NCBI RefSeq assembly: GCF_016432865.1
Contig: NC_067400.1
Coordinates: 299,150,001 to 299,214,000, forward strand
DNA: 64,000 nucleotides
Direction of reading: 5' to 3'
Source of the DNA: Antechinus flavipes
Taxonomy: Eukaryota
Shown here one piece after another: positions 8,111 to 59,223 of the stretch. The translations under genes and the position numbers were made by a program. Position 1 is the stretch's first letter; every line of letters starts with the position of its first letter. The notes beneath the pieces were generated by a model. It ran no database searches, was not told where the DNA came from, and worked only from the letters and a program-made list of their open reading frames with translations.

Positions 8111-9391
8111 TTCTTTCTCTTTTCTGTAAACAATTACTATAGAATATTTTAAAATTTATTTTTGTAGTTAAGTAATTAATATCCAAAAAATCTTGAGAGA
8201 TTTTAAGACTCTTGTCTTCTTCTGCCTTCCCTGACATGGAATCTGGTTTTACATCAGTACCATATTAAACTGATTGTCAAGCTAATTTAATGTACTAGAA
8301 AGTATAAAATCTACTTGAGTAAATTCTTTGATGTTCAGTATATTGATTGCATCTATACAACTATGACTATGGCATAGAGATCTGACATGTATTAGAGAAA
8401 CATTCCTCTTTATTCAACTGTCAGACACACTACCTTTTCCTTTACTCACCTTGTTTAAAATAAGCATGCAGACTATTTCTAATCTGTCAGTCTGTTAACC
8501 AGTCATATCTCCACAAATGGAGAAAAATAATCTGTTTGATAAGTCAGGAATGCCAACTTCATCTGTAACATAAAGGTCACTACACACAAAACAGAATACC
8601 CTGAAGCTCAATAGCCCTCAATAAGCTATAAAAAATGTGAATAATATTGGGAGGCTAATTCTACTGTGGGTTTTTCTGGTTAGTATTTGGAATGTTCACT
8701 TCTCTGTTTTCTAATGGAGCAAAGATTCCCTAAACAGATTTTTACTGGAATTTCCTCCTACTCTCGCCCCTCCCCCAAAAAGAATAACCTGGAAAATATT
8801 TTGATTTTCCAGGTATTATTCTTTTCTGTAAAAGCCTCCCTTCCCCCCCCCCCCCTTTTCCTCAGTATAAGTTAAAAGGCAAGAAAAGTTGTCAGTTATT
8901 ATGAGGTCAGTAGATGTCTTGAAAAGATAACTTGCTTTCTCTGAAAAGCCAAAAGTCATCTTAATATAATTCCTCAGCAAGCTAGGAAAGATTACTCTCA
9001 TACTGTTCTTTCCTTTGTGATGTTTTATTTGTTCTTACAAGCAGAATCTTTGTTCAGACTACAGGATAAAGCCCTTGCATTACTAACAGGCTTTCTTAAA
9101 AGCTATGGGATGTAATTCTACTTCCTACATCCTGTGTGGTTTCTGTTTGGGGAAACCCAGTCTGTTCTAGCCTTAAAGAAAGTCTCTTCCCAATAAATTC
9201 CTAATGGAAACATTCTCCCTCCTTCTGTGTCCAAAGAAGAAAAAGTTTTTTATCTGTTTTTCCACTAGAGGATGTCTCATTGGGCCCATTTGAGTGGGGG
9301 GTTCGGGGTAATCATTTGAGATCACAAGATATTTCTCTGTTTTATAAAAGCTTGTTCATTAAAAATGTATTTATATTAATATTGTCTGTAG

Positions 9392-9481
9392 GTTCATTCC
9401 AGTCTCAGAAAAAGAACCTATTCCACAAAATTGTCAGCAAATATAAGCACAAAAAGGAGAAGCCTAATGTTCCGGAAAAAG
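9392..9481 (+). CDS. BBX: BBX internal coding exon (90 nt, phase 1-1): (G)SFQSQKKNLFHKIVSKYKHKKEKPNVPEK
   Basis: Flanked by tgtag| and |gtactg. The translation matches the recalled vertebrate BBX segment GPFQSQKKNLFHKIVSKYKHKKEKPNVPEKG. It is a symmetric 30-codon exon. Confidence 0.95.
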
Positions 9482-10189
9482 GTACTGGTGAATTCCATCC
9501 TCCATTAAGGTTTCTTGGACACCTCTTTGAATACATTCTTCTGTACCAACAGTCCCCTCCCTTTTCCTTCCTTTTTTGCTTGCTTCATCTTCATCACTCC
9601 TGGCTCATTCATGTAAAAATATTCTCCAAGGTCTAAGGTTGAATGGTTAGGATGATTTCCTTCACCACAATTCCAGCCATCCAATATTTGAATCCTTTTT
9701 TTGGGGGGGAAAGGGGAAGGGAGGGAAGAGGAGGGACATGTTTGTGGATCCTGAAATATCTTTCACATCTCCCAGGTTTTCACTTCATCTATTATCACGT
9801 TGTCATTTTTTTTAATTAAAAAAGCTTCTTGAGCTTTCAACCATGCCTTATCATTTCTTTTTCTTAACCTCATTTTTTTCAGCTTTTGTCAGTTGTCACA
9901 AGTGGTATTCATGTAACACTGGCTTCCATAGTCCTTGCCAGGGGGTGCTCCTTTCTCACCGTCCTTTTACTTCAATTCTTTACTTATTTCCATGGTTAGT
10001 TATAGATCCAATCTCCCTTTCTAATTTCTCCAAATTTTATTAAGTAAGCCTTCTAGAATACTACTATTGGCTGGTTCCTCTCCTTAAAGCACTGACACTG
10101 TTTCAGTCAGTTAAGTGGGGTTCCTAATTAATTCTGGGCCCATCATAAGATTAATTTCACTTTCTGGTTAAATCTTTGTTTCTTTTAAT

Positions 10190-10410
10190 AACAATCATAC
10201 TAAGCTACTCTTTCATTATATTTTACAATTTGTTTAGTACTTTCCTTTGAAAAGCTTGTGAAGAAGGGAGTCAAATACTTTTATCCTAAATTAAAGATGA
10301 AAACCTGAGTCTCATAGATATGACATGATTTGCCCATGTTTTATATAGCAAAATGGTGGTAGATCAGTGGGTGGGAGAGAACCAGGATTAGAACCCAGGT
10401 TTGTTGTTTC
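10190..10410 (-). mobile_element. MIR-family SINE (degenerate)
   Basis: Reverse CORE: aagatgaaaacctgagtctc...gatttgcccatg...ttagaacccagg. Confidence 0.6.
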
Positions 10411-11082
10411 TTTTTTTTATTTAATTCATAAACTAGTGCTTTCCCCACTATACTCTGTTGTTTCTCTTAAATTCTAATTCAAACATCTCATCTGACCCAT
10501 GTATAGTCCCTTATATTGAAAGTTGCATTTTATGAGTCCTCCCTTCACTTCCTGCTATCTCCCTACACATACTTTTTTCATATTTCATTGTATATGTGCT
10601 TGGCTGTGTTTTTGTTTTATACTCAAGTGACTCAGTGCTCTGTGTTGCTTTAATCTGAATGACCTTGTTGTATGCATCTATATACAATTCATGCATGTGT
10701 ATATTTGTATATACATGTAGCTAATTTTGCTTCATTTTATTTTGTCCACTAATAAACTGTTTTCTTCATGTAGAAAAATGTGATGTACAATATTTCAGTA
10801 GATGTTGTTTCCCTCCAAACTAAACTTTGTTTCTTTAACCAATTTACTTACATGACCTTGACCTAGCCACTTAATTTATAATTAAGGAAATTGATCTGCC
10901 ATTATTCCGAATCTGTTTCCAATATTACTTTGTTTTCTTAGTTGGTAAATGCTATTTTGATATTTCAGTCATTGAAGTAAAACTATTTTTAATGAATGTT
11001 TTTATGACTGAATCATAAACACACACACGTTCTGAGGCTAAAGCTTTATTTTCTCTTTTTTTTCTTTCTTCATTATTTTTAG

Positions 11083-11142
11083 AAAAGGTCAATAAATGGC
11101 CAAATAAATAACTTACCTTTGACACCATTCAGCTCACTGACG
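11083..11142 (+). pseudogene. BBX: Decayed/non-coding homolog of a 60-nt BBX exon (pseudo-exon)
   Basis: Long pyrimidine tract plus AG at 11081-11082. Phase-1 reading gives (E)KVNKWPNK*LTFDTIQLTD, versus recalled human GSGDKWSNKQLFLDAIHPTE. TAA lies at 11109-11111 and the in-frame donor position reads TT (11143-11144). Confidence 0.8.
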
Positions 11143-11423
11143 TTATAAAAGACAGTGCACATTTCCATATTCCATAGTCCAGTGAATATAAATATGATTA
11201 GACTATAATTGATCCATGTTGCATGGTCTTGTGGCTAGTTATTCCTGAGTTCATTTTCTAAAACTGGTTTCTATGTATAAATTTGAAAGGAAAAACTTAG
11301 AAAAGAAACCCAGTTGTAATGTTTGATTTAATTATTTTAACAGGATTACACTATAATAATAATAACAATTTTTACATTGATGAGAAATGTGATGTTTAAA
11401 AAGTTGGAATAGCATAGAAGTGA

Positions 11424-11426
<3 letters not shown>

Positions 11427-11502
<76 letters not shown>
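11427..11502. repeat. Compound microsatellite (GT)21(GA)17
   Basis: Read directly: GT repeat 11427-11468, GA repeat 11469-11502. Confidence 0.97.
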
Positions 11503-11506
<4 letters not shown>

Positions 11507-12979
11507 GACATATTGATAGGAGTTGATAAACTTGGAAGACATGTAATATTTTCCTAATCCAGTTTCCAGTTCTTGTCACTTCCTAGATTATGAAACTTAC
11601 ACTGTGCTTTAGTAATATAAGGAAATGTAATAACAGGTCTATGGATCACATTTTTACTTTTAATTTTTTAAAAATTAATTATACTATTATTATATTTGAA
11701 ATCATCCTAATATCCATTTCCCAAACTTCCAAACCAATATTATTTTGTAAGGTTGTTTAAGATGCTTCCTGTAATTGCTAAATATAATTATGCAAATAAA
11801 ATAGAACTGAAAGGAAACTTATAGAGTTCAAAATCCCATTCTACAGATGATAAAACTGAGATCCAGAGAGTGACTTGCTGATGTCAGATTGTTAGTTAAT
11901 GGTAAAGCCAAACAATAGTTCTGTCAGTCCAGTTCTTTTTCACCATTTCATGCCATCTGTGTTGAAAATAGTAATGTGTAAATTGGCCAAAAATTTATTT
12001 CAAAAAGTGTTTGTGTTTCAGTTAGCATTAAAAATACAAACCATTTGTTTTTGTCATTGGGAAATAAGGTTCCTGTCTATCATGTGTCTCTTTTTAAAAT
12101 TATTTTACTTGCAAAATAGCAATCTCATATAAATAATATTTATGATGATATATATGTAATTACATAGATAGAAGGAACACTGAACAGAGAGGCAATATCA
12201 ACTATCAATGAAGAAGCTGAACCTGGTGCTCCCTAAAATCATGCTCAGCTCCAACATTCTATGATTTAATGGTTTCTGTGTCTCTCCCGATGAGGTTAAA
12301 AATCCAATATTATGCACCAAACAGAAAGAGGTCTGCCTTCTCTGCTAAGAGTTATCTTCACAAAATTGATTTTGTGAAAGTCTCAAAATGGTCTAAAATA
12401 GTTTTAATGAGGCTGTTCTTACTGATAAGTTTTAATTTTTACTTACTAATTTGTATAGAACAGTACAATGAAAAGTAAATGATTTTGATTGATTCCCGAT
12501 TTGTCCCAAAAATAAACAAATAAATAAATAAAGCAACTTCAATTTAATTTAACTGTAATTTTTTAGACTGTATTTACCATTAGGTATTTTTATTTAGGGG
12601 ATAAGTATACAATTTGTGGGTTACTTAGATCCTTTTCTTCTCTCTGGTCATTTTACTGCTTCTTAGAAACTTTCCTGGAGACCTTATGGGAATTTAGAAG
12701 GTGAAATTTGAAATCTGTCTCCATACAATATTTATTAGTCTTCCTAATCTTAGCTGTCTGGTAGAAGAAATTTAAAACTGTTGCTTAAAATAATATTGGT
12801 TTAACTGAGACTTTTGGTTATCCATTCAAGGACAGTATATTAAAGTGAAGTGTTATCTTTGGAAGTTTGGAAATCTGAGTTGAAATCCCAGCTTTTCCAC
12901 TTACAACTATTGTGCCTTTGGACAAGTTCATTCAATTTCTCTTGGTCTTGGTTTATTTACATGTAAAATTAGTTTAGAT

Positions 12980-19614: not shown

Positions 19615-19812
19615 CCATACTTTCAGAAGATAAAACCACCACTGAGCCTCTCCGCAAGACTAAAGATGCCCCATCAGTTCCAAGCACTCCAGAGCCAACA
19701 ACAACGCAAGAGCCTTTGGTTGGCAGCCAGAAAAGGAAAGCCAGGAAAACGAAGATCACGCATCTCGTCAGGACCGCAGATGGCCGGGTGTCACCAGCAG
19801 GAGGTACTTTGG
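19615..19812 (+). CDS. BBX: BBX internal coding exon (198 nt, phase 1-1): (A)ILSEDKTTTEPLRKTKDAPSVPSTPEPTTTQEPLVGSQKRKARKTKITHLVRTADGRVSPAGGTL
   Basis: ttatttcag| acceptor and |gtaagg donor; open frame; EPLVGSQKRKARKTKITHLVRTADGRVSPAGGTL is recognisably BBX. Confidence 0.96.
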
Positions 19813-22101: not shown

Positions 22102-22294
22102 ATGACAAACCCAAGGAACAACTGCAGGGTAGTCTCCCTAAAGCATCAGCTACAGATATCGATTGCAATGAGGAATGCTCCCAAAACATCGAAGCAGAGG
22201 AGATTCGTAGTATCACACCAGACATGCCAGCCGTGTCTGCCTTCTTCAGCCTGGCTGCCCTGGCTGAAGTAGCAGCAATGGAGAATGTACACAG
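22102..22294 (+). CDS. BBX: BBX penultimate coding exon (193 nt, phase 1-2): (D)DKPKEQLQGSLPKASATDIDCNEECSQNIEAEEIRSITPDMPAVSAFFSLAALAEVAAMENVH(R)
   Basis: ttgttacag| acceptor and |gtgagc donor; joins in frame with the exon ending at 19812 (G|AT=Asp); MPAVSAFFSLAALAEVAAMENVHR is a conserved BBX motif. Confidence 0.97.
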
Positions 22295-22559
22295 GTGAGC
22301 TGGTGGGAAGTTGCCTTCTACCCAGTCTTGTAGGCTCTTGCCTTTCTTTGGCAGAACGGATCCAAAGAAGGCAGCCTCCAAATCTAGACAAACCCCATTC
22401 CGGCGGTCAGATGTTCATTTTTTTCATGGCCGAATAGAGCCATGTCATCTCTCAGGATTTTGTTTCATATTTTGCTGAGCCTGTCACCTTGTATTGCTTA
22501 CACAAACGAATTAGTTACATGGAAAAACATGGAAGAGAAAATTGGCCAAGCAAATATAC

Positions 22560-28817: not shown

Positions 28818-28905
28818 AAGTCAGCGGGCAGCTCCTCTTGCCCATGATGGACAGCCGAAAGAAATGCCACAGGCTCCCGTACTTATTTCCTGCGCTGACC
28901 AGTGA
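28818..28905 (+). CDS. BBX: BBX terminal coding exon: (R)SQRAAPLAHDGQPKEMPQAPVLISCADQ*
   Basis: Long pyrimidine tract plus tttacag|; phase 2 matches the upstream AG|; ends in TGA at 28903-28905; matches the recalled BBX C-terminus HDGQPKEMPQAPVLISCADQ. Confidence 0.97.
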
Positions 28906-31717: not shown

Positions 31718-31859
31718 NNNNNNNNNNNNNNNNNNNNNNNNNNNNNNNNNNNNNNNNNNNNNNNNNNNNNNNNNNNNNNNNNNNNNNNNNNNNNNNNNNN
31801 NNNNNNNNNNNNNNNNNNNNNNNNNNNNNNNNNNNNNNNNNNNNNNNNNNNNNNNNNNN
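31718..31859. other. Assembly gap (N run)
   Basis: N characters. Confidence 1.
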
Positions 31860-34435: not shown

Positions 34436-34573
34436 NNNNNNNNNNNNNNNNNNNNNNNNNNNNNNNNNNNNNNNNNNNNNNNNNNNNNNNNNNNNNNNNN
34501 NNNNNNNNNNNNNNNNNNNNNNNNNNNNNNNNNNNNNNNNNNNNNNNNNNNNNNNNNNNNNNNNNNNNNNNNN
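34436..34573. other. Assembly gap (N run)
   Basis: N characters. Confidence 1.
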
Positions 34574-59093: not shown

Positions 59094-59223
59094 NNNNNNN
59101 NNNNNNNNNNNNNNNNNNNNNNNNNNNNNNNNNNNNNNNNNNNNNNNNNNNNNNNNNNNNNNNNNNNNNNNNNNNNNNNNNNNNNNNNNNNNNNNNNNNN
59201 NNNNNNNNNNNNNNNNNNNNNNN
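59094..59223. other. Assembly gap (N run)
   Basis: N characters. Confidence 1.

Follow-up and report, generated by a model that had tools for sequence, protein, structure and literature searches.

New exons may form from intronic sequence, a process known as exonisation (Sorek 2007; Alekseyenko et al. 2007, as presented in the review PMC12992808), and for Nrk the gain of a new exon in the placental (eutherian) ancestor has been described (according to the account in bioRxiv 10.1101/2021.02.09.430412). Exons may also disappear, as with exon 3 of TNNI3, which was lost by splice-site decay in moles and shrews (as cited in PMC12992808). The BBX gene offers a further instance in which the two processes have to be told apart. 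A coding exon of 60 nt found in placental mammals, on which a literature search returned no paper, has a recognizable counterpart in an intron of the marsupial Antechinus flavipes; this stretch is the orthologue of the placental exon, unusable as an exon, and is probably the intronic precursor of an exon that was born on the placental stem.

The window, namely the whole 64-kb stretch of Antechinus flavipes DNA that was analysed, covers the 3' half of BBX, encoded on the + strand, and four coding exons could be read by translation. The 90-nt exon at 9392-9481 (phase 1-1, translation SFQSQKKNLFHKIVSKYKHKKEKPNVPEK) agrees with the marsupial BBX models (...KYKHKKEKPNVPEK) and is followed by exons at 19615-19812 (ILSEDK...GGTL, 85% identical to the mouse exon) and at about 22102-22296 (DDKPKE...ENVHR), and by the last coding exon, which ends near 28905 with ...ISCADQ and the stop codon. 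The BBX protein pieces of the window are closest to marsupial models, being a mix of those of dunnart and devil, and identical to neither. At its start, the exon at 19615-19812 reads AIL(S/A)EDK in marsupials, turtle and crocodilians, and AIFSED in placentals and in a bird. The window also contains three runs of N, at 31718-31859 (142 bases), 34436-34573 (138) and 59094-59223 (130).

The 90-nt exon is a cassette exon: some predicted marsupial, placental and crocodilian isoforms leave it out, and their exon joint (here indicated by a slash) is then TSK/AI... or SNK/AI.... Conservation extends from the exon into about 55 nt of the upstream and about 45-65 nt of the downstream intron (9337-9545, 84-89% identical to the bat-like and mouse DNA introduced below). 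The blastn blocks cover 9338-9545 with the bat-like sequence (84%) and 9337-9525 with that of mouse (89%), extending beyond the end of the exon into the conserved start of the downstream intron (9482-9545, + strand), and open reading frames that run from the exon into this intron are similar in placentals. Such conserved flanks are typical of a regulated cassette exon. Only placental fragments matched the open reading frame across the 90-nt exon in the protein collection searched, and five open reading frames around the 60-nt stretch found no match in it.

The properties of the placental exon were established from protein models, retrieved with the 65-residue translation of exon 19617-19811 as the query and by follow-up searches, and from two genomic sequences, namely a contig of a non-human placental mammal (L002), which contains both exons and encodes a bat-like peptide as in Rhinolophus, and the mouse locus (L005). 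The exon encodes a segment of 20 residues located between ...KPNVPEK, or ...TSK in isoforms that omit the 90-nt exon, and AIFSED..., which was found in 137 long placental BBX models of those fetched, with representatives in Afrotheria, Xenarthra and Boreoeutheria. Most placental models contain it and a few predicted isoforms skip it; no part of it falls within the Pfam domains of BBX (HMG box and DUF2028), and in mouse the segment is present in the complete 937-aa protein encoded by a contig free of introns. The commonest form of the peptide, GSGDKWSNKQLFLDAIHPTE, accounts for 29 clusters in the protein database, and the variants differ from it at 1-3 positions. It coincides with the string that the initial annotation had given for human BBX, a statement that was checked through the non-human placentals. 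At the DNA level, the bat-like exon (L002 2534-2593) and that of mouse (L005 71587-71646) are identical at 58 of 60 positions, synonymous sites included, which points to constraint on the nucleotide sequence beyond that exerted through the protein, perhaps on splicing signals.

Two side observations concern the borders of the placental exon. In a lemur model (P0065) the segment is followed by ten additional residues (GKASSIHCLTS), and this isoform would use another donor, located some 30 nt further downstream (...TTTCAG/GT in L002, 2594-2630); the Antechinus stretch has no GT at that place. In mouse, the end of the exon with its donor, CAGAAG/GTAAAAGCA (L005, approximately 71640-71660), is similar over 16-18 nt to the beginning of the exon that follows, CAGAAGATAAAAGCA (approximately 78160-78180). 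That the exon arose as a duplicate of this beginning was considered and set aside as unsupported: the mouse resemblance has an uncorrected p of about 0.03-0.05, the marsupial one a p of 0.7, and the similarity is probably due to chance.

In the Antechinus window, the counterpart occupies positions 11083-11142 of the + strand, in the intron between the exons that end at 9481 and start at 19615. On direct reading, it is preceded by an acceptor-like signal (11044-11082, + strand) formed by a long pyrimidine tract, T/C-rich at about 11044-11080, and by AG at 11081-11082. The G contributed by the exon at 9392-9481 completes a first codon GAA (E), and 11085-11141 then translates as KVNKWPNK-stop-LTFDTIQLTD. 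The stop is the TAA at 11109-11111 (+ strand), which the alignment places at a CAA (Gln) of both the bat-like and the mouse exons and which breaks the frame, so that 11083-11142 contains no open frame in the phase of the neighbouring exons. Immediately downstream, TT (11143-11144, + strand) stands where the placental donor GT is found, the border being G/GTAAAA in placentals and G/TTATAA here. No usable 5' donor, whether GT or GC, was detected at or near 11142, and the remaining GT sites as far as about 11200 were judged by eye to be weak. With an in-frame TAA and no donor, the stretch in its present state cannot, as far as its letters tell, serve as an exon. The initial annotation had described precisely these features, namely an in-frame stop and TT in place of GT after exactly 60 nt, and had placed the stop at a Gln codon, for which a change of CAA to TAA would suffice; direct reading and translation bear out the former, and the CAA of the placental exons agrees with the latter. 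The surroundings include a (CT)n/(CA)n microsatellite at 11396-11560, about 280 nt 3' of the stretch, and a short (CA)5 at 11020-11028.

That the stretch corresponds to the placental exon was established by comparisons of protein and DNA. When the placental 19-mer (residues 2-20 of the segment) was scanned without gaps and with the BLOSUM62 matrix against both strands and all frames of the window (127,888 positions), the position 11085 on the + strand was the top match, with a score of 36 as opposed to 24 for the runner-up (z 5.9), and no other match to the 19-mer was found inside the intron. Eight of the 20 residues are identical. At the DNA level, 38 of the 60 nt match both the bat-like and the mouse exon in an ungapped alignment, the best value elsewhere in the window being 31 (z 6.3), and on including the 13 nt before and the 10 nt after the stretch 56 of 83 nt match the bat-like contig, as compared with 41 at best elsewhere (z 7.7), with no indel in this 83-nt core. 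The acceptor, TCATT-R-TTTTTAG in the marsupial and in the bat-like sequence, is identical at 12 of 13 positions between the two and at 11 of 13 with respect to mouse, with the AG at the same base.

The arrangement of the locus is also the same in the window and in the two placental loci, the 90-nt exon being followed after 1.3-1.6 kb by the 60-nt stretch or exon and, after a further 6.5-8.5 kb, by the AIF/AIL exon; in detail, the distance from the 90-nt exon is 1.6 kb here, approximately 1.36 kb in the bat-like contig and approximately 1.29 kb in mouse. With blastn, the two exons and the stretch were the only alignments obtained across the marsupial and placental introns, apart from a weak colinear similarity upstream of the stretch, at 10938-10982 (+ strand; L002 2366-2410, 73% over 45 nt), which is marginal with an E value of 0.05-0.09. 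Because position, exact boundaries and similarity of both protein and DNA agree, 11083-11142 is, by sequence comparison, a true orthologue of the placental 60-nt exon. The claim of the initial annotation that a non-coding counterpart of a placental coding exon is present thus finds support from all of these sides, and its particulars (the same length and phase 1-1, with eight identities in 20 residues) hold, the 38 of 60 identical nucleotides being clearly above random. It had further stated that the intron between 9481 and 19615 contains no intact copy, and neither the protein scan nor blastn revealed a second copy in the intron or anywhere in the 64-kb window. An origin from a repeat, such as a transposable element, thus finds no sign in the 64 kb of the window, the range over which further copies were looked for.

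As to the use of the stretch in marsupials, the segment is absent from all the 21 annotated marsupial BBX proteins, which represent 10 species (of Gracilinanus, Monodelphis, Dromiciops, Sarcophilus, Sminthopsis, Macrotis, Notamacropus, Petaurus, Trichosurus and Vombatus) and five living orders. These models join PEK/AIL directly, or TSK/AIL with the 90-nt exon skipped. In Antechinus flavipes the flanking exons ending at 9481 and starting at 19615 join in frame (G/CC) to yield PEK/AILSED, as in all marsupial BBX models, and the statement to this effect in the initial annotation was confirmed by translation and by these models; its corollary, that the species makes a BBX without the 20 residues, is supported indirectly, through the 21 models of other marsupials in which the flanking exons are joined directly. 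From the splice signals and the gene models of the other marsupials, we infer that the Antechinus flavipes mRNA skips the stretch. Internal exons are recognized through paired acceptor and donor signals. With a strong acceptor-like signal kept but the donor missing, the spliceosome should therefore pass over the stretch, and the 90-nt exon, or the exon before it, would be joined to 19615 to give ...PEK/AILSED....

The intron was also found in public runs of seven organisms, and the contigs of four runs were compared over 9546-11400. In a run labelled as RNA, from a relative that differs by about 5%, a 341-nt contig is colinear with the window over 11006-11346, and in a further related organism a 260-nt contig is colinear over 11002-11261. 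Neither contig contains a joint at 11083 or 11142, although, being assembled contigs, they are silent on the absence of splicing and on the level of expression. Loose ends observed at 11042-11080 belong to unrelated contigs, whose similarity is to the T-rich tract. In the two close relatives the divergence is 3.8-4.4% in the contig that includes the stretch, versus 4.5-5.3% over the whole intron compared; there is no sign, at the level of these sequences, of special constraint on the stretch among close relatives.

The outgroup set consisted of protein models of turtle, crocodilians and fish and of the intron DNA of one bird, no monotreme protein having come up among the matches. Turtle models connect KFKVPEK to AILAEDK with nothing in between (...KFKVPEK/AILAEDK), those of crocodilians, being isoforms that omit the 90-nt exon, read ...SNK/AILSEDK, and in teleosts the joint is ...DK/AI..., with the segment absent. 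In the bird Limosa (L001) the flanking exons are 7.4 kb apart, and neither the protein scan nor sensitive blastn identified in this intron a counterpart of the placental or of the marsupial version. Since the segment is missing in turtle, crocodilian, fish and bird, the 60-nt exon is, for the lineages sampled, a mammalian novelty. As a separate matter, the Limosa BBX locus (L001 1-29181) is annotated as two genes, with a 661-aa N-terminal and a 190-aa C-terminal model; the latter begins with a doubtful first exon (MLLRETTSLSIG), and the whole looks like a split gene model.

The 22 differences over 60 positions correspond to approximately 0.5 substitutions per site with the Jukes-Cantor correction, and, since the bat-like and mouse exons differ from each other at only two positions, nearly all of them must have accumulated on the branch leading to the marsupial and on the placental stem. 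By commonly quoted dates, these two branches add up to approximately 220 My, with the marsupial/placental split at approximately 160 My. With these dates, the Jukes-Cantor distance implies a rate of approximately 2e-9 per site per year, a value that is about neutral and that, as judged from the sequences, shows no trace of prolonged constraint as a coding sequence in the marsupial branch. The distribution of the differences among codon positions (6, 5 and 10 at first, second and third positions) is uninformative because it is predicted both by a birth in placentals and by an early loss in marsupials, and the neutral-like rate is equally compatible with such an early loss. That the stretch alone, within the intron, can still be aligned is accounted for by the placental side being frozen. 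However, the acceptor retained 12 of 13 positions, versus a neutral expectation of approximately 63%, and, together with the indel-free 83-nt core, this may be a hint of past or present function.

The initial annotation had left the choice between a lineage-specific loss and, if outgroups also lack the exon, a birth in eutherians. Since the outgroups reached do lack it, the birth branch of this alternative is favoured, an early marsupial loss after a gain in therians being the less probable one. We infer birth as the direction of change on grounds of parsimony, since a single gain on the placental stem is required by it and the alternative needs a gain on the therian stem and a loss in marsupials; it is understood that absence from outgroups does not by itself imply that no therian-stem gain with early marsupial loss took place. 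In the proposed sequence of events, the therian ancestor would have had plain intron here, already with an acceptor-like end, and on the placental stem changes at the two key sites would have opened the frame and created the GT donor, giving rise to the exon, which would have been nearly frozen since then. The competing account dates the exon further back, to the therian or mammalian stem, and has the marsupial ancestor still translate it; loss of the donor and a stop codon would then have disabled it early in the marsupial stem, with neutral decay ever since. It is a possible, though rather unlikely, account, in which the retained acceptor and pyrimidine tract, the exactly equal boundaries, the alignment of the 83-nt core without indels and the presence of a single stop in 20 codons would find a natural place, and approximately 0.5 substitutions per site fit an early loss equally well. 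Against it, two events are needed instead of one given the absence from turtle, crocodilian, bird and fish, no marsupial model from the 10 species kept the exon, and a single stop in 20 codons is close to the number that chance would produce in an AT-rich random frame, for which approximately 1.5 stops are expected by our estimate. A recent loss is ruled out, since the 22 differences in 60 positions are to be compared with an exon that changed at only 2 of 60 between the bat-like and mouse sequences.

Retention of the acceptor could also be taken to indicate that the stretch is a maintained non-coding element, either a decoy acceptor or binding platform that tunes the inclusion of the 90-nt exon or a rare poison exon. 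The 12 of 13 acceptor positions identical across approximately 160 My, the location 1.6 kb 3' of a cassette exon with conserved intron flanks and the fact that this is the sole alignable piece of the intron would agree with such a role, which is nevertheless improbable when it is considered that the frozen placental side (2/60) explains the alignability, that divergence among close relatives is that of an average intron, that no usable donor is present and that joints at the borders of the stretch are missing, as far as contigs can tell. A related and similarly improbable scenario would see in the stretch a decoy acceptor that lacks a donor and lies 3' of the alternative 90-nt exon, later made into a coding exon in placentals by gain of a donor and opening of the frame; if it were true, a regulatory intron element would have been the seed of a nearly invariant segment of the BBX protein. 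Finally, the resemblance to the placental exon might be fortuitous, as only 60 nt of AT-rich sequence are involved, or an assembly error might have corrupted a functional exon, the same-species contigs leaving 11096-11157 uncovered. Both are very hard to credit: the former in view of the first rank among 127,888 positions at the protein level and, by a wide margin, at the DNA level, in the expected intron, strand and phase; the latter because the stretch departs from the placental exon at 22 positions, with many radical replacements, rather than at two bases, and because the exon is absent from the marsupial models.

With birth on the placental stem as the preferred reading, the locus can be set against the systems introduced at the beginning. 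The closest one is the placental BBX exon itself, with which the marsupial stretch shares the intron, the strand, the length, the phase 1-1, the base of the AG and a similar distance from the upstream exon, and from which it differs in having TAA and TT in place of CAA and the GT donor; the exon is used in most placental models, whereas the stretch appears in no marsupial one. The loss exemplified by TNNI3 is similar in that a recognizable former or would-be exon with disabled signals is skipped in the mRNA, but in that case the outgroups have the exon at the site, while every outgroup reached for BBX lacks it. As in exonisation, the coding exon is confined to one clade and the orthologous site is plain intron in the sister clade and in outgroups, although many of the cases on record go back to transposable elements and show weak inclusion; the BBX stretch has no further copy in the window, and the exon is found in most placental models and is very strongly conserved. 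The Nrk exon, as described in the cited account, resembles it in being dated to the ancestral placental lineage, albeit in a different gene. Taken in this way, the BBX case is a clean but ordinary exonisation, unusual only in the cleanness of the two states and in the conservation of the exon, and it opens no new question, clade-specific exons from introns being well documented. In practical terms, the C-terminal region of BBX differs among vertebrates by a clade-specific segment of 20 residues, which matters when results obtained with placental BBX are carried over to other vertebrates. Moreover, both states of one exon are seen side by side, coding and nearly invariant in placentals and non-exonic, yet recognizable after approximately 160 My, in marsupials, and they differ at two decisive sites, the G or T of the donor and the Gln or stop codon; this makes BBX a neat case in which to test how small a number of changes can convert intron into exon.
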